64,000 nucleotides of DNA from Macrostomum lignano (taxonomy: Eukaryota): NCBI GenBank assembly GCA_002269645.1, contig NIVC01002211.1:124001-188000 (forward strand), in the 5' to 3' direction. Positions within the stretch are counted from its first letter, which is position 1. Each line of letters starts with the position of its first letter. Below are positions 8,482 to 51,054 of this stretch, one piece after another. Position numbers and translations under genes: made by a program. Under the pieces are notes generated by a model. That model was not told where the DNA came from. It ran no database searches and was given only the letters and a program-made list of their open reading frames with translations.

Positions 8482-8580
<99 letters not shown>

Positions 8581-12067: not shown

Positions 12068-12133
12068 CTGTTTTGGAGCAAGGATAGGGAATAGGATTAT
12101 GAGGATGAGGATGAGGTTGATCATGATGATGAT

Positions 12134-12168
<35 letters not shown>

Positions 12169-12202
12169 GAGAATGGTGAGGATGATAATAATTATGATAA
12201 TA

Positions 12203-12234
<32 letters not shown>

Positions 12235-12268
12235 GAGAATGGTGAGGATGATAATAATTATGATAATA

Positions 12269-12300
<32 letters not shown>

Positions 12301-12497
12301 GAGAATGGTGAGGATGATAATAATGATGATAATAATGATAATGATGATGATGATGATGATGATGAAGAGAATGGTGAGGATGATAATAATTATGATAATA
12401 ATGATGATGATGGTGATGATGATGATGATGATCATGATGATGATGATGAAGAGAATGGTGAGGATGATAATAATTATGATAATAATGATGATGATGG

Positions 12498-12528
<31 letters not shown>

Positions 12529-12562
12529 GAGAATGGTGAGGATGATAATAATTATGATAATA

Positions 12563-12594
<32 letters not shown>

Positions 12595-12733
12595 GAGAAT
12601 GGTGAGGATGATAATAATGATGATAATAATGATGATAATAATGATGATGATGATGATGATGAAGAGAATGGTGAGGATGATAATAATTATGATAATAATG
12701 ATGATGATGATGATGATGATGATTATGATGATA

Positions 12734-12799
<66 letters not shown>

Positions 12800-15700
12800 A
12801 TGATGATAATGATGATGATGATGAAGAGGATAAACGAGGTAAAGATAGGGATAAGTATGCTGCAGCAACGTGTCCAAAGATGCACTATTACGAGCTATCA
12901 ACTCAAGCCGCGGTCTCACGCACTCTAAGAGCGACGGTTTCTGCGAGCCACCGAGTCACGTGACCCGTGCACTCGAAGCGGGCCAGCGGCGACTCTTTCG
13001 GGTGGCCCCGCGGATCAGCCAGCAGATCGAGCGCTCGCTTCAACAGTCGATCGTTGCCAATATTCTCCTCGTTGTCAGCAGCCCGGAGGCAGCGTCTCAG
13101 AGCGTCAAACACTTCCCTGTAGCTGTCGATGCCACCCGCAGGAGGTTCGCGCAGCTGCCAGCAGCCGCCGCCCTGCCAACAAGCCGGCAGCGTTGTTAGG
13201 AGGCAGCCGCGCGAGTCCAAGCCGCGCAGACAGACCAAGGCTCGACCGTCGTCCAGACGCCGACAGGCGACAACTTGAACAAGGCAGCAGAAGCCGCCAG
13301 CCGAAGTCGCCGATGCCAGCAGCAGCGACATAAACCGGCCTGGGCGCGGCTGATGTCGCTGCCAGTCAATCGGCGCCCGACTTGTCAGCCAAAACTCCGA
13401 CAGTTCGTTAGCGGGATTCGCAGGCTCGACAGTCTCCGCCGGCACCGACCGGTCGGACTCCCAGCTGTCAGCCGACAGGCCGGATGATTGACAGCCGCTC
13501 AGAAACCCCTGACAGGCCAGCGAGGCCTGGTGCCGCAGATACCGATGCACCGGCGTCAGCGGCGACACCCTAGTAGATTCCGTCAACATCGGCAGTAGAA
13601 GTTGTTCAGCAAATCTCTGTGCTACGGCAGGCGAACTGGCGGCAACGTGGAGCAGCGGCCACCAGCAGTGCCAGGCGCCGGCAACGTCCAGCAGCTCGGC
13701 GGTGGAAGCTTCGGCTAGCGATAAAAGCGACGACAGCAGACGGTCAGCGGTGGCGTCGGCAGCCAGGCGTCGCAGCGATGTGAACAGTTCCAGTAGCCCT
13801 GCAGACGGCTGGTCTCCGAACCTGACGGAAGCTGGGTCGAAGAACAGCTGAGCGACAATCTTGTCGATGTCGGCCAGAGCTGAGGCTGGCAGCGGCCTCG
13901 GAGCCGCCAGCAAATGCAGACGGTCTAGCAGGGCCCGCAGGCGGTCTGGCACCGAGCCAAGCTCCGACGGTGGCCACGCGCGCAGCGAGTCGATGAACAA
14001 GCGAGGCGAGGCAAAGGCGACGGCCGCGTCCAGGCACTGCAGCGTCGGAGTCGGCGAAGGCATTGAATCGTGGGACGGCGGCTGCAGCAGCATCGGGTCG
14101 ACGAACTCGTTGACTGCGTGAGCCAGTTGGGGCCGGTTGGGAGCTGGGAACTCGACCTGGGCAGAAGGAGACGGGAGAGTGCACTGCTGGAGAGGCTAGA
14201 TCTACAGAGGCACTGTCTAGATCTGCAAAACTATTGTCTAGATCTATAAAACCACTGTCTAGATCTACAAAATCACTGTCTAGATCTACAAAATCACTGT
14301 CTAGATCTACAAAATCACTGTCTAGATCTACAAAATCACTGTCTAGATCTACAAAATCACTGTCTAGATCTACAAAATCACTGTCTAGATCTACAAAACC
14401 ACTGTTTAGATCTACAAAATCACTGCCTAGATCTACAAAACTACTGTCTAGATCTGCAAAACGATTGCCTAGATCTATAAAACTACTGTCTAGATCTACA
14501 AAATCACTGTCTAGATCTACAAAACTACTGTCTAGATCTACAAAACTACTGTCTAGATCTACAAAATCACTGTCTAGATCTACAAAATCACTGTCTAGAT
14601 CTACAAAATCACTGTCTAAATCTACAAAATCACTGTCTAGATCTACAAAATCACTGTCTAGATCAACAAAATCACTGTCTAGATCTACAAAATCACTGTC
14701 TAGATCTACAAGATCACTGTCTAGATCTACAAAATCACTGTCTAGATGAGTTGCTCCCACGCAGATCTCACCTGTCGGACATCAGCGGCCCACCAGTTGA
14801 CATCGGCCACATCCAGATAGCCAGTGGCCCGCCCGTCCGCCGGGTCGCCCTGGGCAGACTCGAGCACGAACATCTCGGCCTCAATAAATGGCACCTTCCG
14901 TACCAGCATCCCAGCTTGCGCCCGCCTCCTGTCGCCAGGCAAGTCGAACCGGGTCAGGTCTACGCTGATGGACGTCAGGCCGTCGGGCCCGCCGCCGTCA
15001 TTCAGCCACACAAAAGTGCCCCTGCGATCGCCTTTGTAGAGCTGCAACGAGTGCTCCGATAAGTCCAGGCTGTGTCCCGGACTCAGTCGGTGCTGCCTAC
15101 GGCAGTTGAGCAGGCCGGAGAAGAAAAACGCCCGGACACTGTCCGGAGGCATGTCAGCCCGTTCGCAGATTGTCAGCTGCCGTTGGAACAGCAGGGCGAG
15201 GCACAGCTGGTCTGGCAGACGCAGCAAGAGAAGACTAAACAGAATGTAGGGATTTCAATTGAATTAGACTGGGCTAATCTCTCGCTCAGATCCCTAATCT
15301 CACTCTTAGATCCCTAATCTAACTCTCAGATACCTAATTTTACTCTCAGATACCTAATTTCACTCCCAGATCCCTAATCTCACTCTTAGATCCCTAATCT
15401 CACTCTCAGATACCTAATCTCACTCTCAGATACCTAATTTCACTCTCAGATCCCTAATCTCACTCTCAGATCCCTAATCTCACTCTCAGATCCCTAATCT
15501 CACTCTCAGATACCTAATCTCACTCTTAGATCCCTAATCTCACTCTCAGATACCTAATCTCACTCTCAGATACCTAATTTCACTCTCAGATCCCTAATCT
15601 CACTCTCAGATCCCTAATCTCACTCTCAGATCCCTAATCTCACTCTCAGATCCCTAATTTCACTCTCAGATCCCTAATCTCACTCTTAGATCCCTAATCT

Positions 15701-18700
15701 AACTCTCAGATACCTAATTTTACTCTCAGATACCTAATTTCACTCCCAGATCCCTAATCTCACTCTTAGATCCCTAATCTCACTCTCAGATACCTAATCT
15801 CACTCTCAGATACCTAATTTCACTCTCAGATCCCTAATCTCACTCTCAGATCCCTAATCTCACTCTCAGATCCCTAATCTCACTCTCAGATACCTAATTT
15901 CACTCCCAGATCCCTAATCTCACTCTTAGATCCCTAATCTCACTCTCAGATGCCTAATCTCACTCTCAGATCCCTAATCTCACTCTCAGATCCCTAATCT
16001 CACTTTCAGATGCCTAATCTCACTCTCAGATCCCTAATCTCACTTTAAGATGCCTAATCTCACTCTCAGATCCCTAATCTCACTCTCAGATGCCTAATCT
16101 CACTCTCAGATGCCTAATCTCACTCTCAGATCCCTAATCTCACTCTCAGATGCCTAATATCACTCTCAGATCCCTAATCTCACTTCCCAATCCCTAATCT
16201 CACTGTCAGATCCCTAATCTCACTCTCAGATCCCTAATATCACTGTCAGATCCCTAATCTCACTTCCCAATCTCACTTCCTAATCTCACTCTCAGATCCC
16301 TAATCTCACTTCCCAATCTCTAATCTCACTCTCAGATCCCTAATCACAATCTCAGATCCTTAATATCACTCTCAAATCCCTAATTTCACCCTCAGATCCC
16401 TAATCTCACTCTCAGATCCATAATCTCACTTTCAAATCCCTAATCTCACTCTCAGATCCCTAATCTCACTGTCAGATCCCTAATCTCACTGTCAGATCCC
16501 TAATTTCACTCTCAGATCCCTAATCTCACTCTCAGATCCCTAATCACAATCTCAGATCCTTAATATCACTCTCAAATCCCCAATTTCACCCTCAGATCCC
16601 TAATCTCACTCTCAGATCCCTAATCTCACTTTCAGATCCCTAATCTCACTCTCAGATCCCTAATCTCACTCTCAGATCCCTAATCTCACTTTCAGATCCC
16701 TAATCTCACTCTCAGATCCCTAATCTCACTTTCAGATCCCTAATCTCACTCTGAGATCCCTATTCTCAATTCCCAATCTCTAATTTCTCTCAGATCCCCA
16801 GAATCTTTTCCAGCTCCAATGTCTTGGCTTCATCAGTTAATTGTCACGCCTAAACGCGAGGGAAGTCTCACCTTTTAGAATGCCGCTCCAGACCGCGCAG
16901 CAGGTGGGCCCAGTCGAACTCGGACTGGCCGCGCCGAAAGTACAGCCGCCATCGACAGTCCACGCCGGCCAAGCCGAAAGCTGACCGGTCGTCCGGCCTG
17001 GCGAGCAGGCGCGACTTGTTCAGCGCGTTGAGCACCAGAGGCGCTGGCAGGCCGATCTCGTGGATTGCGATTCGCTGCTGATCGAGACTGAACTTGCCAA
17101 AGTCTACCAGATCGGTGTAGGCGTCCTTGAGCATCGTCCTGCTGTCTGCAGAGTAGGTTTAGGTGGCTCAGATAGTAGGAATGGCACTCAGATAGTAGGA
17201 ATGGCACTCAGATAGTAGGAATGGCACTCAGATAGTAGGAATGGCACTCAGATAGTAAGAATGGCACTCAGATAGTAAGAATGGCACTCAGATAGTAGGA
17301 ATGGCACTCAGATAGTAGGAATGGCACTCAGATAGTAGGAATGGCACTCAGATAGTAGAAATGGCACTCAGATAGTAGGAATGGCACTCAGATAGTAAGA
17401 ATGGCACTCAGATAGTAAGAATGGCACTCAGATAGTAGGAATGGCACTCAGATAGTAGGAATGGCACTCAGATAGTAGGAATGGCACTCAGATAGTAGAA
17501 ATGGCACTCAGATAGTAGATATGGCACTCAGATAGTAAGAATGGCACTCAGATAGTAAGAATGGCACTCAGATAGTAGGAATGGCACTCAAATAGTAGAA
17601 ATGGCACTCAGATAGTAGGAATGGCACTCAGATAGTAGAAATGGCACTCAGATAGTAGAAATGGCACTCAGATAGTAGGAATGGCACTCAGATAGTAGAA
17701 ATGGCACTCAGATAGTAGGAATGGCACTCAGATAGTAGGAATGGCACTCAGATAGTCGGAATGGCACTCAGATAGTAGAAATGGCACTCAGATAGTAGAT
17801 ATGGCACTCAGATAGTAAGAATGGCACTCAGATAGTAAGAATGGCACTCAGATAGTAGGAATGGCACTCAAATAGTAGAAATGGCACTCAGATAGTAGGA
17901 ATGGCACTCAGATAGTAGAAATGGCACTCAGATAGTAGAAATGGCACTCAGATAGTAGGAATGGCACTCAGATAGTAGAAATGGCACTCAGATAGTAGGA
18001 ATGGCACTCAGATAGTAGGAATGGCACTCAGATAGTCGGAATGGCACTCAGATAGTAGAAATGGCACTCAGATAGTAGGAATGGCACTCAGATAGTAGAA
18101 ATGGCACTCAGCTAGTAGGAATGGCACTCAGATAGTAGGAATGGCACTCAGATAGTAGGAATGGCACTCAGATAGTAGGAATGGCACTCAGATAGTAGGA
18201 ATGGCACTCAGATAGTAGGAATGGCACTCAGATAGTAGGAATGGCACTCAGATAGTAGAAATGGCACTCAGATAGTAGGAATGGCACTCAGATAGTAGAA
18301 ATGGCACTCAGATAGTAGGAATGGCACTCAGAAAGTAGGAATGGCACTCAGATAGTAGAAATGGCACTCAGATAGTAGAAATGGCACTCAGATAGTAGGA
18401 ATGGCACTCAGATAGTAGAAATGGCACTCAGATAGTAGGAATGGCACTCAGATAGTAGGAATGGCACTCAGATAGTAGGAATGGCACTCAGATAGTAGAA
18501 ATGGCACTCAGATAGTAGAAATGGCACTCAGATAGTAGGAATGGCACTCAGATAGTAGAAATGGCACTCAGATAGTAGGAATGGCACTTAGGAGTGGCGC
18601 CAAGATGATAGGAGTGGCGCTAAGATGATGGGAGTGGCTGATAGGAGTGGCGCCAAGATGATAGGAGTGGCTGATAGGAGTGGCGCCAAGATGATAGGAG

Positions 18701-21700
18701 TGGCGCCAAGATGATAGGAGTGGCGCCAAGATGATAGGAGTGGCGCCAAGATGATGGGAGTGGCTGATAGGAGTGGCGCCAAGATGATAGGAGTGGCTGA
18801 TAGGAGTGGCGCCAAGATGATAGGAGTGGCGCCAAGATGATAGGAGTGGCGCCAAGATGATAGGAGTGGCGCCAGGATGATAGGAGTGGCGCCAAGACGA
18901 TAGGAAGCCAGTGCTGGCATCTAAGAAAAATTACCTTCCACCTTCCCTCCTCACCTTCCACCTGCTCGCACCGGGCCCGACAGAAATCCCAAGCGAACTG
19001 GAATTTGCAAAACTCGCTGATCCGTCCGAACTCGTGCCGACTGCTCAACAGGTCGACGACAAACTCCGGCCGAACGTTGTCCACCGTGAGGGTCGGATAG
19101 CTATCGTCGTCGGTTTTGGTTGTCGCCGCCGTCGCTCGGGCGGCAACAGCGGCTTTGACAAACAGATCGCTCCGCAGTCTTCGACCTCTCGCGAGCATTC
19201 GCTGCCAGACGAATTCTCTGGGGTTTGCTGCACCTGCTGCCGTCGGCAACCGGAGCTTCGGGTCGATGCTCACCAACTCGCCAGACTTTGCGGCGTCAAC
19301 GGCGCGGGAGAACAGACGGCCGAGTTCACAGCACTGCCAGCAGTCCGGCCCCAGGCTGTCTGCCCAGCTCTTGTACAGAGTGTCGATTTCTGACGTGACA
19401 GCATGAAATTTATTCTGGCTGGCAAAGTGCCGGATAAGATCATTTTTTGTCGGCGGCCTGACAGATGCAGGCACCTCGGCAGCTGGGTAGTGGTACGGCT
19501 CAGCTTGATGCAGAGGCAACAGGTCTGCGGGATGAGGATCCTCAACTCATTATCTTTGCGCTCTTAATTAGAAACATCTTGGCTACTCTATAGAGTACAC
19601 TTCAGCCACTTTTCAAAATAAATTTTAGCCGCTCGTAAGAATACACCTAGGCCACTCTATAAAGTACACTCTTTAAAGTACATCTCCACTACACTTTAGA
19701 GTAAATTTAGCCACTCTTTAAAGTACAACTCGGCCAATCTTTAAAGTACATTTATCCACTCTTTAAAGTACATCTCGACCACTCTTTAAAGTACATCTCG
19801 ACTACTCTTTAAAAGTGCAATTAAACGCTTTTAAAGTACATTTTAGCCTCCTTTTACAGTACATCTCAGACAGCACAGCGAATACACACACAATGATCAA
19901 GCAACTGGGTCTCCTCACCGGGATCCCAGCACACAAAGAATTGATCCCCGTCCAGGTCGGAGCCGGAAATCTCGCTAGGATGCGACCGCGGTCCCCGCAC
20001 CGGGAACACGATGCAGTCCACCAGGTGGTTCAGCGCCGCCAGTCCCGGCTTGTCCTCGTCAGTGACAGCCAGAAGCACCCGAACGTCGCCCAGCAGGTAG
20101 CAGGGACTCTTCGTCACCACAACCTGACCGCGCAGACTCAGCGGCGAGCCGCCGTCAGTGATCCGGACGAAGCATTCGCCGTATTCTAACAGCTGCTCAT
20201 TGGTTTGGTCGCAGACTCCGAACAGGTTGCGGGACAGCGGCACCAGGATGTGCAGGCGGTCGCAGCGTTCAAGCAGCTTCGATTGAAAGCTGGCGAGTCT
20301 GGCGCGCAGAATTTTGTGCCTCTGCGCCATGGCGTCCTGAGATTTTGATGATGTAGGATGAACTGGGAGTCTGGATCCTTCAAGTCAGAACAGACATGAA
20401 TCTCACTAATCACCTGAGAGCCGGACAATGCCTAATGATGAATCTCTCTAATCACCTTAGTGCTAGACAATGCCTAATGATGAATCTCTCTAATCACCTT
20501 GGTGCTAGACAATGCCTAATGATGAATCTCTCTAATCACCTTAGTGCTAGACAATGCCTAATGATGAATCTCTCTAATCACCTTAGTGCTAGACAATGCC
20601 TAATGATGAATCTCTCTAATCACCTTAGTGCTAGACAATGCCTAATGATGAATCTCTCTAATCACCTTAGTGCTAGACAATGCCTAATGATGAATCTCTC
20701 TAATCACCTGAGAGCCGGACAATGCCTAATGATGAATCTCTCTAATCACCTGAGAGCTGGACAATGCCTAATGATGAATCTCTCTAATCACCTGAGAGCT
20801 GGACAATGCCTAATGATGAATCTCTCTAATCACCTGAGAGCCGGACAATGCCTAATGATGAATCTCTCTAATCACCTGAGAGCCGGACAATGCCTAATGA
20901 TGAATCTCTCTAATCACCTGAGAGCCGGACAATGCCTAATGATGAATCTCTCTAATCAACTGAGAGCTGGACAATGCCTAATGATGAATCTCTCTAATCA
21001 CCTGAGAGCTGGACAATGCCTAATGATGAATCTCTCTAATCACCTGAGAGCCAGACAATGCCTAATAATGAATCTGTGTGCCCAGCAACAAAGAATATTC
21101 CACTCACGCTAATCAAGTCGGACCCGGCTGGCGCAGTCAGCGTCTCCTTGTGCATGCGCAGCAGCTGACTTGCCAGAAGGAATTCGCCTCGCCAGCGCAG
21201 CACAGCGATGGCCGCTTCAGGATCCGTTGCCATGCGGCGGAGCCGGTCGAAGTGCTCAGACTGGCGGGCCAGGAAGGCGGAGTCGGGCACGCCCAGGCCT
21301 GAGGGAGGGAGACGATGAGACAAAAGTTACACTTGGCTCTACTTGACTTAAATCACATGGTGCTCTACTCAATCTACCCGGTATTCTACTCAATCTACCC
21401 GGTATTCTACTCAATCTACCCGATATTCTACTTAATCTACCCGATATTCTACCCGGTATTCTACTTAATCTACCCGGTATTCTACTTAATCTACCCGGTA
21501 TTCTACTTAATCTACCCGGTATTCTACTTAATCTACCCGTTTTCTATTCTAGCAAATAGAACAGATATTTTTCCATTGACATACCCGAAAGCAAAGTAAT
21601 AAACTGCCTGTTCAGCTGTCCGAAAGTGTAAGGTCGCGAATATTCGCACAGACTAATTTCCGAGTGCTTTTCGGTTTGAAATTTCAGCATCGACGGTCGA

Positions 21701-24639
21701 ACTAGCATACGCGGCGCCGAGCCGAGACTGCGGTCCTGGGCCAGCACGCCTTTGTAGCCGCGGTAGCGGATCTGGGCGGCGGTTGACAACTTCGATGCTT
21801 AAATTACTTATAAATACCAAATATAGACGGAGTGGGGTGGCTGCAGATAAGGCAGGGAGTGGGGTGGCTGCAGATAAGGCAGGGAGTGGGGTGGCTGCAG
21901 ATAAGGCAGGGAGTGGGGTAGCTGCAGATAAGGCAGGGAGTGGGGTGGCTGCATATAAGGCAGGGAGTGGGGTGGCTGCAGATAAGACAGGGAGTGGGGT
22001 GGTTGCAGATAAAACACGGAGTGGGGTGGCTGCAGATAAGGCAGGGAGTGGGGTGGCTGCAGATAAGGCAGGGAGTGGGGTGGCTGCAGATAAGGCAGGG
22101 AGTGGGGTAGCTGCAGATAAGACAGGGAGTGAGGTGGTTGCAGATAAAACACGGAGTGGGGTGGCTGCATGGAAGGCAGGGAGTGGGGTGGCTGCATATA
22201 AGGCAGGGAGTGGGGTGGTTGCAGATAAAACACGGAGTGGGGTGGCTGCAGGTAAGGCAGAGTTAAGGTTAAATTTGCATTCAGATAGCCGTCCCCTAAC
22301 CTGATAGACGGACGGTAGGGCAGCTTGGCGTGCAGCGGGTCCGTCGCCGTCTGCGCACCCCATGGACGCCAGGAACTCCTCGTCCGTGTCGTCGCCTTCG
22401 CCGAACACACCGGCGCAGATTTGACGAGCCAGCTCTGGACTGACGCTGCCGCAGCCGTCGGTGAAACAACTGCGAGCGTTTTGAATGTCAGCAGCTTCGA
22501 TCAGCCAGTCAGACGGAACCGTCACGTGACTGGGGCGGACAGAGCTGAATAGCAGGCCGATTCTGGCCTGGCGCTTGGGCACGCTTGGGATCGCCTGAGA
22601 ATCACGCGGACGGATTTCAATTCATTTTAAGCATGCTATTTGCAACAGAATTTGCAACTAGATAGTGACTCATTCCGTAAACTAATATGTGACTAGTTCC
22701 GTGAACTGATCAGTGACTCATTTCGTAAGCTAGACAGTGACCCATTCCGTAAGCTAGGCAGTGACTCATTCCGTAAGCTAGACAGTGACCCATTCCGTAA
22801 GCTAGACAGTGACCCATTCCGTAAGCTAGGCAGTGACTCATTCCGTAAGCTAGACAGTGACTCATTCCGTAAGCTAGACAGTGACTCATCAACGAATACA
22901 AGAGAAACTCACTAGAAAGGGATTTACTTAAAATGGGCAAAAATCTCACCTGAAACTCCCCGTGCGAGGCCAACACAGCCTCCGCATCGGAGGCGCCGCC
23001 CTGCCACAGGTAGCACTTGCGCTGCTTCAATCCGCCAGAGCTGCAGCCCAGATATGAGAATTGCTGCCCAGCAACTAGCAGCGAGTTTCCCTCTAGTAGA
23101 AAATGCTCCACAGTCGAGCTGGGCACCCGCTGTTCGAACTGCAACAACAGAAGCCGATCGGGACCTTCAACATCTATCAATCGGTTCTCTACCAACTCCC
23201 AGGACTGTTTGGCGAAGTGCTCCGACACAGTCAGCACCCGGATTCGGTGCCCGCGCTGTCGCCGACTGCTCGACTGATTGTGGAGAAGCGACAACGGTAC
23301 TTTGTTGCCGCAGTCCTGAGCTGACGGAGGCGGATCCACGTAGAAGGCCAGATGATGCAGAATCGACTGCTTGACAGCTGGCTTCTTCTTTTTGGCGCCC
23401 AGCTCGGCGTAGTGCTTCAGCGAGGCCGTTGCTAGGGGAAACTCGCCTTCGATTGCGCTGTTCAGGGATCTTTGGCGGATGAAGGGGATGGGGGTAAATT
23501 GAATAGTTTGATTGACAGCCCTGTCTGATGGACAGTAGTAATTTTCGGCCAGTTATGTACTTTTAATTTTACTCTCTTCTTTCGCTCTGATTACTCACAT
23601 TCCACAGGTACTTCCCATTATTTTTTTCTCATTTCTTATCTATTGCGATTTCCTAATCTTTGCGTCTCATTACTCACGATTCCCTGATTCTCACATCTCA
23701 TCATTCACGATTCCCAAATCATGTATCACCATTCACGATTACCTGATCCTCACGTCTCATCATTCACGATTCCCAAATCATGTATCACCATTCACGATTA
23801 CCTGATCCTCACGTCTCATCATTCACGATTCCCAAATCATGTATCACCATTCACGATTACCTGATCCTCACGTCTCATCATTCACGATTCCCAAATCATG
23901 TATCACCATTCACGATTACCTGATCCTCACGTCTCATCATTCACGATTCCCAAATCATGTATCACCATTCACGATTACCTGATCCTCACGTCTCATCATT
24001 CACGATTCCCAAATCATGTATCACCATTCACGATTACTTGATCCTCACGTCTCATCATTCACGATTCCCAAATCCTCACTTATCGTCATTCACATTTTTA
24101 ATGCTTCGGAGGGTCTCTAGAGCCTAGTTTGTTACAGATAGAAAGTTAAGCAAAGCCGGCTGTGGTTAGTACTTCACGCAGAGCTGCACTCACTTCGCCG
24201 CGGCAGCCAGGCCATCCTCAGTGGAAGCGTCAACAACCAGCCCCATGAGTGGCACCAACAGGTGGTCGCACAGTTCAACGAATTCTTTCACATATTCCTC
24301 GTCAACCGCGGCGTTGAAGTCAACAACTGGACGGCGAATTAGCACGACAAGGGAGCTGCGGTAGAGGGCGACGCTCTCGCCCAGCTGTCCGTCGACAATG
24401 TCGACGTCCGTTCGGCCATGCTCGAGCAGCAAGTCTAGCGCCGAATTGGCGCTGGCAAAATCTGGCGCCATCGACTCCTCTTGGCGCCGAATTTCGGCCA
24501 GAGACGAATCGAAATTTTCGCATCGAGTTCGTCGAATCGTTCGCCGGCGACATCTGCGCAGAGCGTCGGAGTGGCGACACGCGGCCAGCAGACGGTCCTG
24601 AAGCTCTTCAAGGCTGCGACCGCAGAGAATCAGGCGCAT
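10229..24639 (-). CDS. Eukaryotic RNA-dependent RNA polymerase fused to a UPF1-like SF1B helicase and an RGG/Trp repeat tail, 11 exons, ~2144 aa
   Basis: Exons (minus): 24639-24194, 23469-22950, 22594-22301, 21771-21585, 21298-21108, 20336-19919, 19524-18955, 17145-16872, 15234-14772, 14156-12924, 12067-10229. All GT-AG, phases match, total 6435 nt with no internal stop. RdRP motifs reassemble across junctions: ARIGLLFS, FTDGCG, YQ|IRYRGYKG, LLS|GLGVP, TKSPC, SGSDLDGDQFFVCWD. Helicase motifs: GPPGTGKS, QHRM, TRAR. The 5' end is uncertain, and alternative splice sites a few nt away are possible at the 12924/12067 junction. Confidence 0.88.
10235..10830 (-). repeat. 36-bp coding minisatellite (12-aa RGG/W units)
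   Basis: In frame at the 3' end of the helicase exon. Confidence 0.9.
12105..12830. repeat. (GAT/AAT)n trinucleotide array with higher-order GAAGAGAATGGTGAG units, intronic
   Basis: Direct reading; source of the poly-His/Met/Ile ORFs. Confidence 0.95.
14200..14746. repeat. 21-bp minisatellite (TCTAGATCTACAAAATCACTG)n, intronic
   Basis: Tandem array. Confidence 0.95.
15285..16795. repeat. 20-bp minisatellite (CACTCTCAGATCCCTAATCT)n, intronic
   Basis: Tandem array. Confidence 0.95.
17165..18905. repeat. Two abutting 20-bp minisatellites: (ATGGCACTCAGATAGTAGGA)n, then (GGAGTGGCGCCAAGATGATA)n from ~18590
   Basis: Tandem arrays, intronic. Confidence 0.95.
19919..20336 (-). CDS. RdRP catalytic exon (DxDGD at 19958-19944)
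   Basis: Translates VVVTKSPCYLLGDVRVL...VDCIVFPVRGPRSHPSEISGSDLDGDQFFVCWD, the double-psi-barrel active-site signature of cellular (RNAi) RdRPs. Confidence 0.95.
20395..21075. repeat. 42-bp minisatellite, intronic
   Basis: 14-aa periodic shadow ORF MMNLSNHLRAGQCL. Confidence 0.93.
21365..21540. repeat. 21-bp minisatellite (CTACTTAATCTACCCGGTATT)n, intronic
   Basis: Tandem array. Confidence 0.9.
21820..22258. repeat. 27-bp minisatellite (GGAGTGGGGTGGCTGCAGATAAGGCAG)n, intronic
   Basis: Tandem array. Confidence 0.93.
22665..22888. repeat. 24-bp minisatellite (GTGACTCATTCCGTAAGCTAGACA)n, intronic
   Basis: Tandem array. Confidence 0.9.
23690..24075. repeat. 59-bp minisatellite, intronic
   Basis: CATTCACGATTCCCAAATC recurs every 59 nt. 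Confidence 0.9.
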
Positions 24640-24654
24640 GTGGGAGCTGCAAGA

Positions 24655-25250
24655 TGTGGGGATGTAGGGTTTTATGGATGTAGGGATGCAGGGTTTTATC
24701 GATGTAGGGATGTAGGGTTTTATGGGTGTAGGGATGAAGGGTTTTATGGATGTAGGGATGCAGGGTTTTATGGATGTATGGATGTACCATGTAGGGTTTT
24801 ATCGATGTAGGGATTTAGTGTTTTATGGATGTAGGGATGTAGGGTTTTATGGATGTAGGGATGTAGGGTTTATGGATGTAGGGATGTAGGGATGTTTTAT
24901 GGATGTAGGGATGTAGGGATGTTTTTATTGATGTAGGGATGTAGGGTTTATGAATGTAGGGATGTAGGGTTTTATGGATGTAGGGATGTTGGGTTTTTTG
25001 GATGTAGGGATGTAGGGTTTATGGATGTAGGGATGTAGGGTTTTATGGATGTAGGGATGTTGGGTTTTTTGGATGTAGGGATGTAGGGTTTATGGATGTA
25101 GGGATGTAGGGATGTAGTGATGTGGGGATGTAGGATTTTATGCATGTAAGGCAGTAGAAATTGTAGGGTCGTGTAGATGCAGGGATGTAGGTTTGTAAGG
25201 ATGCAGACACGTAAGGTAACGGATGCAGAGCTGTAGGGATGTAGGGCTGT
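24655..25250. repeat. G/T-rich minisatellite (GATGTAGGG / GTTTTATG units)
   Basis: Tandem degenerate array just 5' (minus sense) of the first RdRP exon. Confidence 0.88.
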
Positions 25251-25909
25251 TGACTAAACAATTATAAGCAAAAGCCCAATAATGTTTAGTTTAGCAGCTT
25301 AGATGACACTGATAAAGAAGCAGATAAATAAGTAACAGGTTAGACTACAATGGTTTTAATTAATCATTAAAAATGAATAATTTATCTGTTGCGATTGTGT
25401 TAGACATTATTGCTCAGTATATATTTCCACTCTCTAAATAGAATATCAATGTTTAAACAATTTGAAATTCAAACAAAAACAAACAAAAAACGAAGTCCAA
25501 CACCTAAAGACAAGAGTACCAGGGTAAATAAAACAAATAAAAGTTAGCAACAATATCTGGAAGTGCGGCGAATATTTTTATAACAGGCCGGAAAAAATCA
25601 GCCATTAGGGCAAGTGCGTTACTAAAAAATTGAGATAAAAAATGTTCTAGTCAGAGTATGGAATGTAATAACAATGCCTGGTATTAAGTATATAGCTGCT
25701 TTGTAAATAATACAACTATTGAGACACACTATACTAGCCCACCGTGACTGCTGCTAATGGAATGCTTTCGAATTTTTTTTTATTAAAAAATGAAATTTGC
25801 AAGCAAAACAATTACCTTAAAAAATCGATGAGATGGGAGGCAGAGGTGTATACACTGACAGGGCGGGTGATGTGAGATTCCTCTGTGGCTAACTAACTCT
25901 GATGGGTTA

Positions 25910-26495
25910 GGATGGGCTGTGGGGGATGGGATGGGGCTGTGGGGAGTGGGATGGGGCTTTGGGGGTGGGATGGGGCTGTGAGGGATGGGATGGGGTTGTG
26001 GGGAGTGGGATGGGGCTGTAGGAGGAGTGGGATGGGGCTTTGGGGGATGGGATGGGGCTGTGGGGGATGGGATGGGGCTGTGGGGAGTGGGATGGGGCTG
26101 TGAGGAAGTGGGATGGGGCTGTAGGAGGAGTGGGATGGGGCTTTGGGGGATGGGATGGGGCTGTAGGGGAGTGGGATGGGGCTTTGGGGGAGTGGAATGG
26201 GGCTTTGGGGAGTGAGAAGTGGGATGGGGCTTTAGGGGAGAGGGATGGGGCTGTAGGCGGAGTGGGATGGGGCTGTAGGCGGAGTGGGATGGGGCTGTAG
26301 GCGGAGTGGGATGGGGCTGTAGGGGGAGTGGGATGGGGCTTTAGGGAGGGGGATGGGGCTGTAGGGGGAGTGGGATGGGGCTGTAGGGGGAGTGGGATGG
26401 GGCTGTAGGGGAGTGGGATGGGGCTTTAGGGAGGGGGATGGGGCTGCAGGGGAGTGGGATGGGGATGTAGGGGCAGTGGGATGGGGCTGTGAGGT
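25910..26495. repeat. G-rich minisatellite (GGGATGGGGCTGT..GGAGT)n
   Basis: Tandem degenerate array. Confidence 0.88.
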
Positions 26496-27594
26496 AGGGA
26501 GGGGGCTTATTTGCAGAAAAATGCACAGACCGTGAGATTAATAACACCTGCATAATTATGAGTATAGAGGCGAACATTACACAACATTTCAGCATGCATT
26601 CAAGTTGCAAATCCGATAAAACGATATTAGAGAAAAATTATTTAAAAAAACAAAAGTTAAACTCAGAAACCAAAAAGAGTAAAATAAACTTTAAAGATTG
26701 TTAGACCGCAATATCCAATGTATCAACAGTGAATAAAATTCTCATCAAAGAAAGTAAACAGTTTACAACTGGAAGGCAACCTTAAGTATCAATTGTAAAA
26801 AATAGCTTATTTTATGATTTCACGAAACCGAAACTACTCATGCGATAGTAGTATGTTCAGCAGTTTAAGAGTTCAATTAATCAATAGCTCAATAACGGGG
26901 TTACTTTTGTCATAACCTGGGTCAGATTATTAAATTTGTATTAGAAAATTCATCAAAAATTAACAAAAATTGATAATAAATAATAATATCAAAAAGAAGA
27001 GATTATAAACGTTATTTTCTGACAAGACGAAAGAAATTACATAGCAGAAAGATCGAAAAAGTACAAAGACCGGAATGACTATATCTGTTTCTAATTGACG
27101 GTTTTAAATTAGAAAAAAAGTTGTTTTTAAAAGTCCAAAAGTCCTTACTGTGCTACTAACAGTAAGGAAAAAGGAAAAAAAATCATTAAAAATTCGAAAT
27201 TCCATCAACAAGGCGAAACACAGGGCCAAATTCTCTGTTAATTTTTAAAAAAGGCGCGAAATATTTAGGAAAAACATTAAAACAAATTATGATGTGGCCA
27301 GATTGTGGGAGATTGCGGACTGTACGATCGAGAATGGTTAGAATGTTGTCTACAGCCAGCAAAAAAATTTGATCAGAGAGAGGAAAACTTCGACACCAGA
27401 CTAGAAGTGAAAGCAAAATGGGATTCTTTAATCTGCATTAAGAAAATATTTTCAAAATTAAAAATTGTGTCAGTTGTTAAACGGTACGAGAATTAGGATC
27501 TGGGAGTCTGAATTTATGTAATCGGATTTTCAGCAGCAAATCCAAATAATATATGGGAGATTTATCCAAGGAATATTTAGGAGATTTTATCCAT

Positions 27595-30347
27595 GGGATA
27601 TCCGGGAGATTGTCTATGGTTCCAAATCCATGTGATATCCGGGAGATTGTCTATGGTTCCAAATCCATGTGACATCCGGGAGATTGTCTATGGTTCCAAA
27701 TCCATGTGATATCCGGGAGATTGTCTAAGGTTCCAAATCCATGTGATATCCGGGAGATTGTCTATGGTTCCAAATCCATGTGACATCCGAGAGAGATTGT
27801 CTATGGTTCCAAATCCATGTGATATCCGGGAGATTGTCTATGGATCCAAATCCATGTGACATCCGAGAGAGATTGTCTATGGTTCCAAATCCATGTGATA
27901 TCCGGGAGATTGTCTATGGTTCCAAATCCATGTGATATCCGGGAGATTGTCTATGGTTCCAAATCCATGAGATATCCGGGAGATTGTCTATGGTTCCAAA
28001 TCCATGTGATATCCGGGAGATTGTCTATGGTTCCAAATCCATGGGATATCCGGGAGATTGTCTATGGTTCCAAATCCATGGGATATCCGGGAGATTGTCT
28101 ATGGTTCCAAATCCATGGGATATCCGGGAGATTGTCTATGGTTCCAAATCCATGTGATATCCGGGAGATTGTCTATGGTTCCAAATCCATGGGATATCTG
28201 GGAGATTGTCTAAGGTTCCAAATCCATGGGATATCCGGGAGATTGTCTAAGGTTCCAAATCCATGTGATATCCGGGAGATTGTCTATGGTTCCAAATCCA
28301 TGGGATATCCGGGAGATTGTCTAAGGTTCAAATCCATGTGATATCCGGGAGATTGTCTATGGTTCCAAATCCATGGGATATCCGGGAGATTGTCTATGGT
28401 TCCAAATCCATGGGATATCTGGGAGATTGTCTATGGTTCCAAATCCATGTGATATCCGGGAGATTGTCTATGGTTCCTAATCCATGGGATATCCGGGAGA
28501 TTGTCTATGGTTCCAAATCCATGGGGTATCCGGGAGATTGTCTAAGGTTTCAAATCCATCGGATATCTGGGAGATTGTCTATGGTTCCAAATCCATGGGA
28601 TATCCGGGAGATTGTCTAAGGTTCCAAATCCATGTGATATCCGGGAGATTGTCTAAGGTTCAAATCCATGTGATATCCGGGAGATTGTCTATGGTTCCAA
28701 ATCCATGGGATATCCGGGAGATTGTCTATGGTTCCAAATCCATGGGATTCCGGGAGATTGTCTATGGTTCCAAATCCATGGGATATCCGGGAGATTGTCT
28801 ATGGTTCCAAATCCATGTGACATCCGGGAGATTGTCTATGGTTCCAAATCCATGTGATATCCGGGAGATTGTCTATGGTTCCAAATCCATGTGATATCCG
28901 GGAGATTGTCTATGGTTCCAAATCCATGTGATATCCGGGAGATTGTCTATGGTTCCAAATCCATGTGACATCCGAGAGAGATTGTCTATGGTTCCAAATC
29001 CATGTGATATCCGGGAGATTGTCTATGGTTCCTAATCCATGGGATATCCGGGAGATTGTCTATGGTTCCAAATCCATGGGATATCTGGGAGATTGTCTAT
29101 GGTTCCAAATCCATGTGATATCCGGGAGATTGTCTATGGTTCCTAATCCATGGGATATCTGGGAGATTGTCTATGGTTCCAAATCCATGTGACATCCGAG
29201 AGAGATTGTCTATGGTTCCAAATCCATGGGATATCCGGGAGATTGTCTATGGTTCCAAATCCATGTGATATCCGGGAGATTGTCTAAGGTTCAAATCCAT
29301 GTGATATCCGGGAGATTGTCTATGGTTCCAAATCCATGGGATATCCGGGAGATTGTCTAAGGTTCCTAATCCATGTGATATCCGGGAGATTGTCTATGGT
29401 TCCAAATCCATGGGATATCCGGGAGATTGTCTAAGGTTTCAAATCCATGGGATATCTGGGAGATTGTCTATGGTTCCAAATCCATGGGTTATCCGGGAGA
29501 TTGTCTAAGGTTCCAAATCCATGTGATATCCGGGAGATTGTCTAAGGTTCAAATCCATGTGATATCCGGGAGATTGTCTATGGTTCCAAATCCATGGGAT
29601 ATCCGGGAGATTGTCTATGGTTCCAAATCCATGGGATTCCGGGAGATTGTCTATGGTTCCAAATCCATGGGATATCTGGGAGATTGTCTATGGTTCCAAA
29701 TCCATGTGATATCCGGGAGATTGTCTATGGTTCCAAATCCATGTGATATCCGGGAGATTGTCTATGGTTCCAAATCCATGGGATATCCGGGAGATTGTCT
29801 ATGGTTCCAAATCCATGTGATATCCGGGAGATTGTCTAAGGTTCAAATCCATGTGATATCCGGGAGATTGTCTATGGTTCCAAATCCATGGGATATCCGG
29901 GAGATTGTCTAAGGTTCCAAATCCATGTGATATCCGGGAGATTGTCTATGGTTCCAAATCCATGGGATATCCGGGAGATTGTCTAAGGTTCAAATCCATG
30001 TGATAACCGGGAGATTGTCTATGGTTCCAAATCCATGTGATATCCGGGAGATTGTCTATGGTTCCAAATCCATGTGACATCCGGGAGATTGTCTATGGTT
30101 CCAAATCCATGTGATATCCGGGAGATTGTCTATGGTTCCAAATCCATGTGATATCCGGGAGATTGTCTATGGTTCCAAATCCATGTGATATCCAGGAGAT
30201 TGTCTATGGTTCCAAATCCATGTGATATCCGGGAGATTGTCTATGGTTCCAAATCCATGTGATATCCGGGAGATTGTCTATGGTTCCAAATCCATGGGAT
30301 ATCCGGGAGATTGTCTAAGGTTCCAAATCCACGTGATATCCGGGAGA
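27595..30347. repeat. 37-bp minisatellite (GGGAGATTGTCTATGGTTCCAAATCCATGTGATATCC)n, ~74 copies
   Basis: Period 37 (e.g. 27604, 27641). Confidence 0.96.
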
Positions 30348-30371
30348 TCAACACCCTCACAACAGAGCCAG

Positions 30372-33300
30372 TCACAGCCGCAGCTTCTCCAAGTCAAACA
30401 GCAGGATAACATTGCGCCGCGGGTCGCAGGCGGCAGCCAGACTGTCGGTAACTTCGCACAGGTCGGCCAGCAGGCCAGACTGAGTCTTGAACAGACAGAC
30501 GGCCGCGTCGGCGGTAGCGGCGGCAGCTGTGCCGGCGGCGGACAAATCGAGCGACATCAGACAGCCAGCAGACGAGTCGTTCTCGGCCGATTTCGTGCAA
30601 ACCAACCGGTCGCCAATGGCAACCAGAGCCGGTTGGGCAGCCGACACCAGGCTAACAGACGAGCTGTTGTCGGATTTTGCCGAGGACTCCGATGCCAAGG
30701 GCAACAGGACTGGATTCTTGCCACCCGGATTGGTCACCTCCAGTACTAGAAATTCGTATCTATTCGATTTGCAGCGCAGGGTGGCAACTAGGATGCGAGG
30801 GCCCGGACACCAGGTGAGTCGAACCGGACAGCCCGGGTCAGTCTGGGGCAGGGTGGCCCGGACAGAGTCGTCCGAGCAGGAGAAGATGAACACGCCGATC
30901 CGGGGACAGCAGACAAAGATCAGCTCGCCGTCTGTGGCCGCGTCTTCTGGTCTGCGGGAAGCGGCGAGCTACTGACTACAGCTGCCAGATCTACTGACTA
31001 CAGCTGCCAGATCTACTGACTACAGCTGCCAGATCTACTGACTACAGCTGCCGGATCTACTGACTACAGCTGCCAGATCTACTGACTACAGCTGCCAGAT
31101 CTACTGACTACAGCTGCCAGATCTACTGACTACAGCTGCCAGATCTACTGACTACAGCTGCCGGATCTACTGACTACAGCTGCCAGATCTACTGACTGCA
31201 GCTAAGTTCTACTAACAGGCGCCAGATCTAACAACAGGGGCCAGATCTAACAACAGGGGCCAGATCTAACAACAGGCACCCGATTTAAAAACAGGCGCCA
31301 GATCTAACAACAGGCGCCAGATCTAACAACAGGCACCCGATTTAAAAACAGGCGCTAGATCTAAAAACAGGCACCAGATCTAACAACAGGCGCCAGATAT
31401 CTAACAACAGGTGCCAGATATCTAACAACAGGCACCAGAGCTAACAACAGGCGCTAGATCTAAAAACAGGCACCAGAGCTAACAACAGGCACCAGATCTA
31501 ACAACAGGCGCCAGAAATCTAACAACAGGCACCAGATCTAACAACAGGCGCCAGAAATCTAACAACAGGCGCCAGATCTAACAACAGGCGCCAGATCTAA
31601 CAACAGGCACCCGATTTAAAAACAGGCGCCAGATCTAACAACAGGCACCAGATCTAACAACAGGCGCCAGATCTAACAACAGGCGCCAGATCTAACAACA
31701 GGCACCAGATCTAACAACAGGCGCCAGATCTAACAACAGGCGCCAGATCTAACAACAGTCGGCGCAGACAAACCTGCTAAGCGAATACTTGGCCGACACG
31801 GCCGGGCCGATGCGGCGCTCCGCATAGCCGCTGGGCCACACGGTCAGCAGGCAGCCGTTACGGTTGTCAACTAACAGAAGCCACTCTCGCACCGCGCAGG
31901 CCACCAGCCGGTAAGGATCAATCTTTGGCCCAGTCTCGGCCGGTTCGCCTTTAAACTGCAACTGGTTCAAGAAATTGCCGCCCTGGTTGTACACGCGAAC
32001 GCATTTCACTGGCTGGGTCTCCACGGCGTAGAATTTTCCTAAGAGATGCGTCAGCGACACCGGCCGGCCCTCGGCTTTGAACGTCTGACAGCTGGAGTCA
32101 GTTTCCACTTTGCCGCGGCGCTTCTTTTTACGCGGACGCAGCCTCGATTCCATAGCGACGGCATCCGTCTCCCAGAACTCCAGCTCGTCTCGGTGCGGAG
32201 CCGACGCGACGGCTGCGGGATCGGCGTCTCTGAATTGTTGATCAAAATCGTCGACTAGCGAGGAGCCACCGACGCCGACACCGCCAGAAGTAGGCAGCAT
32301 TGGCGACGGCGTCGCTGACGACGGGGTCGTCGTTCCGACGGCTTCGGCGGAGTTCACGTCGGCCTCGAAGTCGAGGCCGAGACTGCCGAATCCGTCAGCG
32401 TCGGCCGCTTCAATAGCGTAGTCGACAGCGTCAATGAGGTCGTAGAGTCGAGATTGGGCCTCCTCCAGACAGCAGACGGGACCTTCGGGCCCGGCCAGCC
32501 GACCGGACAGGGGCGTCAGCAGGCGGACCAGCCTGACCAGCTCCTCCATGTCCTCCTCCTCTTCCACCGCCTCCGTCTTGTCCGCACCGTTGGTTCTGCC
32601 GCCGTCGGAATCGGCAGTGTCGTCGGTGTCGACGGCGCGCAGAGCCCGGCCGCACTCGTCCAGCAGGTCGTCGAGTTCGCCATGGCCGGCCAGGCGGTCA
32701 AGCACGCGCTGCCGACGGTCCTCCAAGGCGGCGGCCGCTTCGTCGAAAAAAGCAACAGCGGCGGCGCGTTCGCGATTTCGAGCTTCTCCGTTGGCGAGTT
32801 CGGCGAGGCGGCCGACAGCGGCGGCATGGAGGTCAAGCGCCTGCGATGGCGAGGCGAGGGAAGCGCGGAGTTAGACGACAAAAGCTTCAACTTTCCCAGT
32901 GCTAGCCAAAAGCCAAAATAAAAAGACAAACGCAGGAACGCAGATGTGCAACCGACAGCTCAGCTGCAGCCATTGCGCGGCGCATCTGAAGGCTGCGTAA
33001 CGGCTGTTCAGTCCAAGGACTGGGGGGGTCGCCAAACGCACCTTCAATTACCCCAGCTAATGCTGGCACCCATTTTACAGCTGGGTGGAATGAAGCAATG
33101 CAGAGTTAAAGTGTCTCTGAGTGGGTCGAGAATCGAACCCCCGACCTTTCAGTAGTGAGTCCGCCGCTCTAACCACTGGGCTAAAACCCCTACTGTAAAG
33201 CAGCACAATAAAAAAACGCAGTAAAAACGCTAAAGCGTTTACGGAGAATACAGAATAGCACATCTGAAGGTCGGGGAAAATTACTCGTAGATTTTAAAGA

Positions 33301-33577
33301 TGCTGAAAAAGTACATTTGAGGATAAAAGAAAAATACATTTTGGTGCATGATTTAAGATACACAAAATAATGGGATTATAGTAGTATCACTTCATACAAT
33401 GCATATTAGAAGCCAAAATTCGAGTTAAAACAGGTAAAAATGACGCACCTGTTTCCGCAGCTCTCGCCCGTGCCCAGCTAAACAGGTGGGGCAGAGCCGG
33501 CGCGAACAATGCAGACAGTCCGATAGACGGCCAGGCTGACCGCCACGATTGCAGTCTGCGCATTCGTTCATCGCCAT
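30372..33577 (-). CDS. B-box zinc finger + coiled-coil + NHL/beta-propeller-like protein (TRIM-NHL-like, no RING), 3 exons, ~591 aa
   Basis: Exons 33577-33449, 32840-31774, 30951-30372; phases 0 and 2 match; 1776 nt. CxxC...CLHCSRRLCPTCLAGH (B-box-like), then a helical acidic coiled region. The exon 2/3 junction rebuilds an NHL-like repeat, LSR|PEDAATDGELIFVC. Confidence 0.72.
30971..31757. repeat. 22-bp array (ACTGACTACAGCTGCCAGATCT)n followed by 19-bp array (AACAACAGGCGCCAGATCT)n, intronic
   Basis: Tandem arrays sharing GCCAGATCT. Confidence 0.93.
32941..33192 (-). mobile_element. tRNA-derived SINE (family B, longer copy) in intron 1 of the B-box gene
   Basis: Head GGGGTTTTAGCCCAGTGGTTAGAGC...GGTTCGATTC; body shared with the copy at 48750-48915. 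Confidence 0.75.
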
Positions 33578-33755
33578 CGTATTAATAAGTAGTAGAGGCA
33601 GGATATTCTTTAACAACGGCAGGTGTATATTTTTAGTAAAGAAACTATTTCCGATTAGATTTGTTTTCTGCAGGAATAAATGAGAAACATGAAATTACCA
33701 ATGCTCTGGTAGTGCTCTACTAGATTAATCATAATCTTAAGTAACCTTCTATCCC

Positions 33756-34117
33756 TAGGTGGGCCGTAGCCCAGCGGTAGCGCAGCTGCTCTGGTGTGCC
33801 AGCGACCCAGGCTCGATTCCAAGTGCAGTCACATTAATTTGGGGCTGAATTGGAATCTCGGCTTGGCTCTGCTTGTGCAATTAACGGCCTTGAGAGCCAA
33901 CCCCCCAAGACGCAGTGAAGTGTACATGCCTAACGATAATATAAAGTTAGGGCCGCTGTACACTCCTGTGTGATTGTGTGCCTGCGTACGTATCCGCGCG
34001 CTTGTGTGCCTGCTCAGGGGAATCGGCAGAATGGGCCATAATGCCTCTCGCCGGTTGTGTGCCTATGTCGCTTAAAGTGCGCCAGGGTGCACACAACCCC
34101 CCTGTCTCAAATAAAAA
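33756..34117 (+). mobile_element. tRNA-headed SINE with A-rich tail and 13-bp target-site duplication
   Basis: A box TAGCCCAGCGG, B box-like GGCTCGATTCC, tail AAATAAAAA. Direct repeat AACCTTCTATCCC at 33743-33755 and 34118-34130. Confidence 0.8.
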
Positions 34118-40140: not shown

Positions 40141-40414
40141 CTCTCCCTCTTCCCCCTCTTGCATTTCTCCTATATTCAACTCTTAAGACCTAAACACTTA
40201 TGAAAAGCGTAATTTTCGTCTGAGACGTAAGGAAAGATTCAACGAATATCTTGGAAACTCCGCATCACACAGGGAGAACGCCAGCCAGGAATACATTCAG
40301 CCGCCAGCCTGTGACCTGGGCGTACCGGCAGTGCCCTCGTTCATAAACGAGTGCGTCTGGCGAATTAACATCAACTCCAGTGTGACGGGGACTGCGCCAG
40401 CTCCTGGTGTACCC

Positions 40415-51054
<10,640 letters not shown>

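Follow-up and report, generated by a model that had tools for sequence, protein, structure and literature searches.

A probable diverged RING-less TRIM-NHL-type gene upstream of the RdRP-helicase gene of Macrostomum lignano

The minus strand of a 64,000-nucleotide (nt) stretch of Macrostomum lignano DNA (the window; positions 124,001 to 188,000 of contig NIVC01002211.1, assembly GCA_002269645.1) carries a three-exon gene for a 591-amino-acid (aa) protein and, downstream of it on the same strand, a gene for an RNA-dependent RNA polymerase (RdRP) fused to a UPF1-like superfamily 1 (SF1) helicase. We consider it probable, on balance, that the first of these is a genuine, constrained protein-coding gene of M. 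lignano which encodes a diverged RING-less TRIM-NHL-type protein with a Brat-style architecture, and whose co-transcription with the RdRP gene is plausible.

The NHL-like gene and its three genome copies

The gene runs from 33577 to 30372 on the minus strand, with a coding sequence (CDS) of 1776 nt and GT/AG at both introns. Its parts are as follows (a slash in a splice-site sequence marks the junction):

33668..33673 (-): spliced-leader-type 3' acceptor CTGCAG, fitting [T/C]TNCAG; the annotated mRNA/CDS starts at 33667, immediately 3' of it
33449..33577 (-): exon 1, aa 1-43, nearly all Cys-rich zinc finger; the donor CAG/GTGCGT is a junction common to the annotated proteins
32841..33448 (-): intron 1, holding a fragment (~33121-33200) of a tRNA-like short interspersed nuclear element (SINE)
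31774..32840 (-): exon 2, aa 44-398 plus 2 nt, with the helical region, an acidic linker, a basic patch resembling a nuclear localisation signal (NLS) and the first propeller blades
30952..31773 (-): intron 2, with two satellite arrays, a 19-mer x28 (31214-31758) and a 22-mer x10.7 (30969-31203)
30372..30951 (-): exon 3, aa 399-591 and the TGA stop; acceptor CCCGCAG/A

The coordinates, exon count and length given in the first-pass annotation of this DNA were correct: apart from a 30-residue 5' leader read-through in the database record, the translation is that of PAA59930.1 (P0015, BOX15_Mlig008166g2), which is annotated as an M. lignano 'hypothetical protein' and was the sole match in a word-indexed database search. 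PAA80208.1, PAA59930.1 and PAA71683.1 use exactly the same splice junctions as the three-exon model, and nine stretches of the window DNA, sampled from 22950 to 33900, show 0 mismatches to NIVC01002211.1 (GCA_002269645.1). Since the junctions match the protein records and the DNA matches the contig, the gene is BOX15_Mlig008166g2. An older 913-aa model (P0017) fuses the upstream open reading frames (ORFs) 40265-40603 and 45099-45524 (-) to exons 2-3 and conflicts with the three other annotated models, all of which have three exons; it was rejected because it skips the zinc-finger exon and because the fused upstream ORFs have no Pfam match.

The last nucleotides of the spliced leader in M. lignano are ...TTGCATG (PMC8629364). 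The first exon begins at 33667 and no stop interrupts the frame on the way to Met1, so that the leader AUG would be in frame with the NHL-like gene and would add a methionine and 30 residues (KTNLIGNSFF...LLLINT) before the zinc finger; for the RdRP gene it is out of frame. In the third genome copy (L003, 9998-10123) the protein starts MNEC... as compared with MAMNEC...; nothing in this copy aligns with the first ATG codon, so that not all copies have the same start codon. ARAGORN found no tRNA anywhere in the window; tRNA-like, probably SINE-derived fragments with a GGTTCGATTCTCGACCCAC box lie at 33121-33200 (intron 1), 33760-33850 and 48801-48819.

The M. lignano genome is neopolyploid and consists of three subgenomes (PMC10733133); we compared the window with two further copies of the locus, one on contig NIVC01000593.1 (L001) and the other L003. 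The reading frame of the NHL-like gene is intact in all three copies, with one amino-acid difference seen. In the exons, 4 of 1776 nt differ from each of the other two copies (~0.2%); in the first unique block of the spacer that separates the gene from RdRP, 14-22 of 1097 nt differ (1.3-2%), and in the second block the figure is 0.5-1.3%. The lower divergence of the exons, small as the numbers are, suggests constraint on the coding sequence. A pseudogene reading was rejected on the same grounds, i.e. the three intact frames and an exon divergence below that of the spacer.

Domain architecture of the encoded protein

Four regions can be delimited along the protein:

30375..32072 (-): six-bladed NHL beta-propeller, ~aa 300-591, split by intron 2; placed by family profile, AlphaFold and Foldseek
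33470..33562 (-): B-box1-like zinc finger, aa 6-36, C-x2-C-x11-C-x2-C-x4-C-x2-C-x3-H, found as a regular-expression match
32370..32834 (-): acidic alpha-helical region, candidate coiled coil, aa 46-200, isoelectric point (pI) 4.2
32112..32138 (-): basic patch RPRKKKRRG, aa 278-286, resembling a classical NLS

From family profile and structural model, the C-terminal domain can be regarded as established to be a six-bladed NHL propeller, which adds to what was on record for a protein so far annotated as hypothetical. The family profile was built on an alignment of 14 non-redundant copies of this domain (A1), and against the PDB it matches NHL domains only. The top 12 matches are TRIM-NHL domains with expectation values (E) of 1.9e-12 to 5e-8; Thin/TRIM32 (E 1.9e-12), TRIM3 (E 2.3e-11), TRIM2 (E 2e-10), TRIM71 (E 8e-9) and Brat (E 3e-8) are matched in this range, and NHLRC2, NHL-2 (8suc, E 0.0076) and Mei-P26 more weakly. 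Run with A1, AlphaFold2 gave a confident all-beta model with 26 strands (predicted local distance difference test, pLDDT, 82; predicted template modelling score, pTM, 0.85). In a Foldseek search with this model the NHL domains of Thin, Brat, TRIM2 and TRIM71 rank first, at template modelling (TM) scores of 0.61-0.71, and generic WD40 propellers rank below them; solved NHL domains are only ~9-15% identical to the propeller. The NHL-like propeller of the first-pass annotation is borne out by these results, and it was the family alignment, not the single sequence, through which profile search and AlphaFold recovered the fold. The full-length 591-aa protein itself has no match at E<=10 to any Pfam family, Pfam NHL (PF01436, gathering threshold 20 bits) included. 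Among the paralogues PF01436 reaches 21 bits in P0003 and 15 bits in P0007, and matches at E<=1 occur in 2 of the 14 family domains. A single-sequence AlphaFold model of the whole protein (pLDDT 38) was discarded as unusable, and a word-indexed profile search with the family alignment returned no match. We attribute the failure of single-sequence profile searches to detect this TRIM-NHL-type protein to its strong divergence.

The domain belongs to a family that we have so far found in M. lignano alone. Searched exhaustively with phmmer, 1.84 billion representative proteins gave 13 matches, one being a 204-aa copy of the protein's own N-terminus and the other 12 covering only the C-terminal ~290 residues; all ten of the clusters looked up from these matches are from M. 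lignano, and the search yielded no orthologue outside this species. The family comprises at least ten 90%-identity clusters, some of whose members have several propellers. The zinc finger is absent from all ~30 family paralogue sequences examined, and the 591-aa protein is the sole member that carries one.

Members of the family stand in tandem same-strand arrays on three contigs, among them NIVC01000019.1 (L004, 6721-21872; proteins P0003-P0036), and the family is expanded in M. lignano. Proteins with two or three propellers occur, e.g. P0032 with 1068 aa. The automatic UniProt names given to family members are inconsistent (CNH, MMS1_N, RIC1, DUF295, WD repeats, Ig-like), so that the family has gone unrecognised.

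The N-terminal part has no RING: the only Cys-rich segment of the protein begins 5 residues after Met1, and there is no other Cys/His cluster in it. Upstream of Met1 the annotated mRNA extends for 90 nt, as far as the acceptor site. Some accepted TRIM-NHL members, such as Brat, likewise have no RING. As for the finger, H48 in exon 2 is a possible eighth ligand; the full pattern, residues 6-48, then ends in H-x11-H, a last spacer that is over-long for B-box1. When the N-terminal 113 residues were searched against the PDB (177,635 sequences), the best match was the B-box1 of TRIM28/KAP1 (E 0.16, with all Cys/His aligned) and the second-best the B-box-coiled-coil region of TRIM3 (E 0.17), both non-significant. 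Excised N-terminal pieces gave equally non-significant Pfam matches to SAC9_C8D (E 0.022 with 60 aa, 0.18 with 204 aa) and, as the best B-box model, to zf-B_box_Trim66 (E 1.6 with 60 aa). With non-significant matches that all point one way, a B-box identity of the finger is plausible.

For the region that follows, single-sequence AlphaFold predicts helices at 30-59, 65-94, 99-111, 136-157 and 163-191, with low confidence (pLDDT 40-57 for aa 30-191). An FFD-x8-RR motif in the helical region occurs in paralogues too, and a profile of the family's N-terminal helical regions found no TRIM coiled coil in the PDB. We infer that RPRKKKRRG, by its likeness to a classical NLS, may be a localisation signal. 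Taken together, a TRIM-like N-terminus is plausible. The first-pass assignment to a B-box-like and coiled-coil type holds with respect to the B-box1-like Cys/His pattern and to the best matches, TRIM28 and TRIM3; it stays suggestive in that no profile match is significant and that the helices are low-confidence predictions. 'TRIM-NHL-like' is a fair description of the protein and the right one for its C-terminal domain; strict TRIM-NHL membership is shown for the NHL part only.

The TRIM-like order of parts could also be convergent, if exon shuffling had joined an unrelated finger, of the zinc-ribbon or treble-clef type, to an NHL propeller. Such an origin would fit a finger that has its own small exon, occurs in 0 of the ~30 family paralogues examined, shows a last-His spacing (x11) outside the usual B-box1 range and gives non-significant B-box profile matches. 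We nevertheless regard it as decidedly unlikely: the two best N-terminal PDB matches, among 177,635 sequences, are both TRIM B-box regions, the remaining ligand spacing fits B-box1, the helical region comes directly after the finger as it does in TRIMs, and the propeller is nearest to TRIM-NHL proteins rather than to NHLRC2 or bacterial NHL proteins.

If a TRIM-NHL-type protein is assumed, it would consist, from the N-terminus on, of a single B-box1-like zinc finger, a helical region that is acidic and probably a coiled coil, an acidic linker with the NLS-like patch and the six-bladed NHL propeller. Since it has no RING, the protein should not be an E3 ligase. The architecture suggests that it would probably act as a non-catalytic adaptor, which would multimerise via the helical region and thereby present its NHL propellers to an RNA or protein ligand.

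The RdRP-helicase gene and the spacer

Downstream of the NHL-like gene the window carries the following features:

24647..30371 (-): spacer of 5725 nt between the NHL-like and RdRP genes, consisting of a 37-mer satellite (27589-30348), 1.1 kb of unique AT-rich sequence, a 22-mer satellite (25910-26490), 0.76 kb of unique sequence and a 24-mer satellite (24653-25148)
24647..24652 (-): TTGCAG, a 3' acceptor of spliced-leader type for the RdRP mRNA, whose exon begins at 24646; the annotated PAA59929.1 CDS begins at 24645
10229..24645 (-): RdRP + UPF1-like SF1 helicase gene, 2146 aa, equal to PAA59929.1 (BOX15_Mlig014113g2)
24645..24194, 23469..22950, 22594..22301, 21771..21585, 21298..21108, 20336..19919 (-): exons 1-6 of the RdRP gene
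19524..18955, 17145..16872, 15234..14772, 14156..12924, 12067..10229 (-): exons 7-11 of the RdRP gene

The RdRP gene was rebuilt from splice-site candidates, the choice being constrained by its annotated length (2146 aa). One of two candidates was exact, its product being identical to PAA59929.1 from the first to the last residue, with the ATG at 24639. Pfam RdRP (PF05183) is found on four minus-strand ORFs between 23339 and 18620, and the exon 20336..19919 scores 129.9 bits and contains DLDGDQFF, an instance of the catalytic motif DxDGD. AAA_11 and AAA_12 lie on the ORF 12919..10229 (-), and the helicase part matches UPF1 (E 2.6e-12). From the stop of the NHL-like gene (30372) to the RdRP ATG (24639) the distance is 5.7 kb on the same strand, exactly as first described. 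The further statement that no recognisable gene lies between the two holds as well: the public annotation calls none there, and the listed spacer ORFs of >=60 aa (>=100 aa below 29000) all fall in satellite arrays. The three arrays make up 3837 of the 5725 nt, i.e. two thirds of the spacer, and the remainder is AT-rich and unique.

All three genome copies share this spacer layout and differ in array lengths. Most introns of the two genes, as well as the spacer, carry satellite arrays of their own with distinct repeat units (window 10246-31758, L001 13176-17063, L003 12949-20060). Across the three copies the 37-mer is present 27.6, 74.6 and 42.6 times and the 21-22-mer 25.6, 27.6 and 137.6 times, the unique blocks being constant.

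A search with an RdRP exon for divergent M. lignano RdRP paralogues returned only a 100%-identical fragment (P0037) and further fragments, one of them from the rotifer Adineta. Except for P0037, all M. lignano RdRP entries returned fall in one 90% cluster, so there is no independent paralogous RdRP locus with which the neighbourhood could be compared.

Some further features of this part of the window are recorded here. Between the RdRP and helicase domains, ~700 residues of the fusion protein have no assigned domain, and its C-terminal tail derives from an in-frame 36-bp tandem array (10246-10829) that encodes RGG-rich 'GGRDQREWQSAR' repeats. Downstream of RdRP, four exon-like ORFs (4070-8519, -) encode an AMP-binding (acyl-CoA synthetase-like) enzyme with PF00501 and PF13193 (E 1e-15 to 1e-23), and the public annotation of the contig lists no gene at these ORFs. 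The ORF 57919-58602 (-) contains a PX domain (PF00787, E 5.8e-11) and is probably an exon of a sorting-nexin-like gene.

Linkage of the two genes and known systems

The trans-splice acceptor motif of M. lignano is [T/C]TNCAG (PMC8629364), and both annotated 5' ends lie directly after acceptor-type motifs, CTGCAG (33668) for the NHL-like gene and TTGCAG (24647) for RdRP; judged by these motifs, both mRNAs appear to be spliced-leader trans-spliced. In the Mlig_3_7 annotation, genes were derived from multi-gene precursors by cutting these at trans-splice and poly(A) sites, and one name prefix is given to all transcriptional units that cluster together at 95% identity (PMC5730564). On NIVC01000593.1, the copy with the shortest satellites of the three, the NHL-like gene is Mlig008166g3 (PAA80208.1) and the RdRP gene Mlig008166g4 (PAA80209.1), and this common prefix implies that one assembled transcript spanned both genes. 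Transcriptional units tend to break in repeat-rich operon spacers (PMC8629364). The genes are, as operon genes should be, adjacent on one strand, and no gene of the opposite strand separates them. Since one genome copy annotates both in one transcriptional unit, their co-transcription is plausible.

Several observations weigh against a Brat-style protein gene that is co-transcribed with RdRP. On the side of the protein, Pfam searches with the full sequence and with three pieces gave nothing significant, the B-box and coiled-coil assignments are without statistical support, and the propeller, with a net charge of ~0 and a pI of 6.75, lends no support to a basic RNA-binding face, without speaking against RNA binding as such. 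On the side of transcription, the two genes have different prefixes in the window copy (Mlig008166g2 vs Mlig014113g2) and in the L003 copy (Mlig003028g1 vs Mlig034233g2). The published operon criterion is a repeat-adjusted intergenic distance of <=1 kb, for which its authors also subtract transposon-derived sequence (PMC8629364); with tandem repeats only subtracted, the spacer measures 1888 nt in the window (5725-3837), 1786 nt in L001 and 1891 nt in L003, each more than 1 kb.

The first-pass annotation went further and proposed a functionally linked RNA-silencing cassette. The same-strand adjacency with nothing in between, the spliced-leader acceptor motifs at both 5' ends and the common transcriptional-unit prefix of one copy agree with the proposal; the functional link goes beyond the evidence. 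In a true cassette, which would be one spliced-leader-resolved operon, the RdRP-helicase would have the NHL protein as its cofactor, e.g. for the recruitment of template RNAs or of Argonaute complexes, on the model of C. elegans NHL-2 with DRH-3, CSR-1 and HRDE-1. Such a cassette would be in keeping with M. lignano being the only flatworm with RdRP genes among the species surveyed (PMC5594548), and with known RNA binders in the family nearest to the propeller. The repeat-adjusted spacer of more than 1 kb speaks against it, and so does the frequency of operons: as ~15% of M. lignano genes are in operons (PMC8629364), operon membership alone says little about shared function. Because the three loci are near-identical neopolyploid duplicates, their common layout is no evidence of conserved linkage; an independent conservation of the adjacency is lacking, no orthologue outside M. 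lignano was found, and the family paralogues that could be located form a tandem array, in which no RdRP lies closer than 10 kb. Finally, no co-expression or interaction data for the pair were found, and the gene identifiers were found neither in full texts nor in the supplements, including the supplementary tables, of three M. lignano expression papers, of which the supplement text is possibly incomplete. We consider the cassette possible but doubtful, and a functional partnership between the NHL-like protein and the RdRP-helicase, taken for itself, somewhat unlikely. Its most specific form, a single spliced-leader-resolved unit co-expressing a RING-less NHL adaptor and an RdRP-UPF1-like helicase, with the propeller selecting templates or bridging Argonautes, seems by analogy conceivable and is unlikely.

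The genes might also be neighbours by chance, with a fast-evolving, lineage-specific NHL-family gene lying beside RdRP, an adjacency that is found in three copies owing to recent genome duplication, and a common prefix that stems from assembly read-through or multi-mapping in the satellites. The copies differ by only ~0.2% in exons, as expected of a neopolyploid with three subgenomes (PMC10733133), two of the three are annotated as separate transcriptional units, the transcript assembly permitted <=1000 multi-mappings per read (PMC5730564), and the same-strand gene downstream of RdRP is an unrelated AMP-binding enzyme. However, given the link between NHL-2 and DRH-3, a TRIM-NHL-type gene would be an unlikely draw as the neighbour of an RdRP-helicase gene. 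The RdRP mRNA, moreover, starts at an acceptor with satellite DNA directly upstream, so RdRP transcription must begin some distance upstream. To us, chance neighbourhood has a probability that falls just short of even.

To our knowledge, amplification of small RNAs by RdRPs has a patchy distribution among animals, and hardly any of its cofactors are known except from nematodes. The upstream neighbour of RdRP, as a cryptic TRIM-NHL-type protein possibly made from the same transcription unit, is a concrete candidate cofactor, in a flatworm that is transgenic and amenable to RNA interference. Were the single-unit form of the cassette true, an RdRP complex would be encoded at one locus, in what is, as far as known, the one flatworm lineage that has retained a cellular RdRP. 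If the link to RdRP is coincidental, the finding is an annotation improvement only. Independently of RdRP, a whole M. lignano-specific family of 'hypothetical' or inconsistently named proteins turns out to consist of diverged NHL propellers.

Compared with the spliced-leader operons of M. lignano (PMC8629364), the locus is alike in its same-strand neighbours, its [T/C]TNCAG downstream acceptor, its repeat-inflated spacer and the one copy annotated as a single unit; it differs in a spacer of 1.8-1.9 kb vs the 1-kb criterion and in two of three copies annotated as separate units. The protein would match Drosophila brain tumor (Brat) in the order of its parts, with putative B-box-type finger(s) and a candidate coiled-coil helical region ahead of the C-terminal six-bladed NHL, and like Brat it has no RING; the Brat NHL is among the top profile (3e-8) and fold matches of the propeller; Brat, however, has two B-boxes and a basic RNA-binding face, as against one B-box1-like finger and a propeller charge of ~0 here. 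Thin/TRIM32, TRIM2/3 and TRIM71/LIN-41 provide the best profile (1.9e-12 to 8e-9) and fold matches (TM 0.61-0.71) of the propeller. They have a RING, and TRIM2/3/71 also a filamin domain; the M. lignano protein lacks both and is therefore not expected to act as a ubiquitin ligase.

C. elegans NHL-2 and DRH-3 are unlike the M. lignano pair in that the helicase DRH-3 is Dicer-related (RIG-I-like), whereas that of M. lignano is UPF1-like and forms one protein with the polymerase. We know of no report that the C. elegans NHL-2 and DRH-3 genes are linked. What the two systems would have in common is a TRIM-NHL protein working with an RdRP module, and NHL-2's own NHL domain is a weak profile match of the propeller (8suc, E 0.0076). 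In C. elegans, NHL-2 co-immunoprecipitates with DRH-3, CSR-1 and HRDE-1 and affects 22G-RNAs (PMC6351104).

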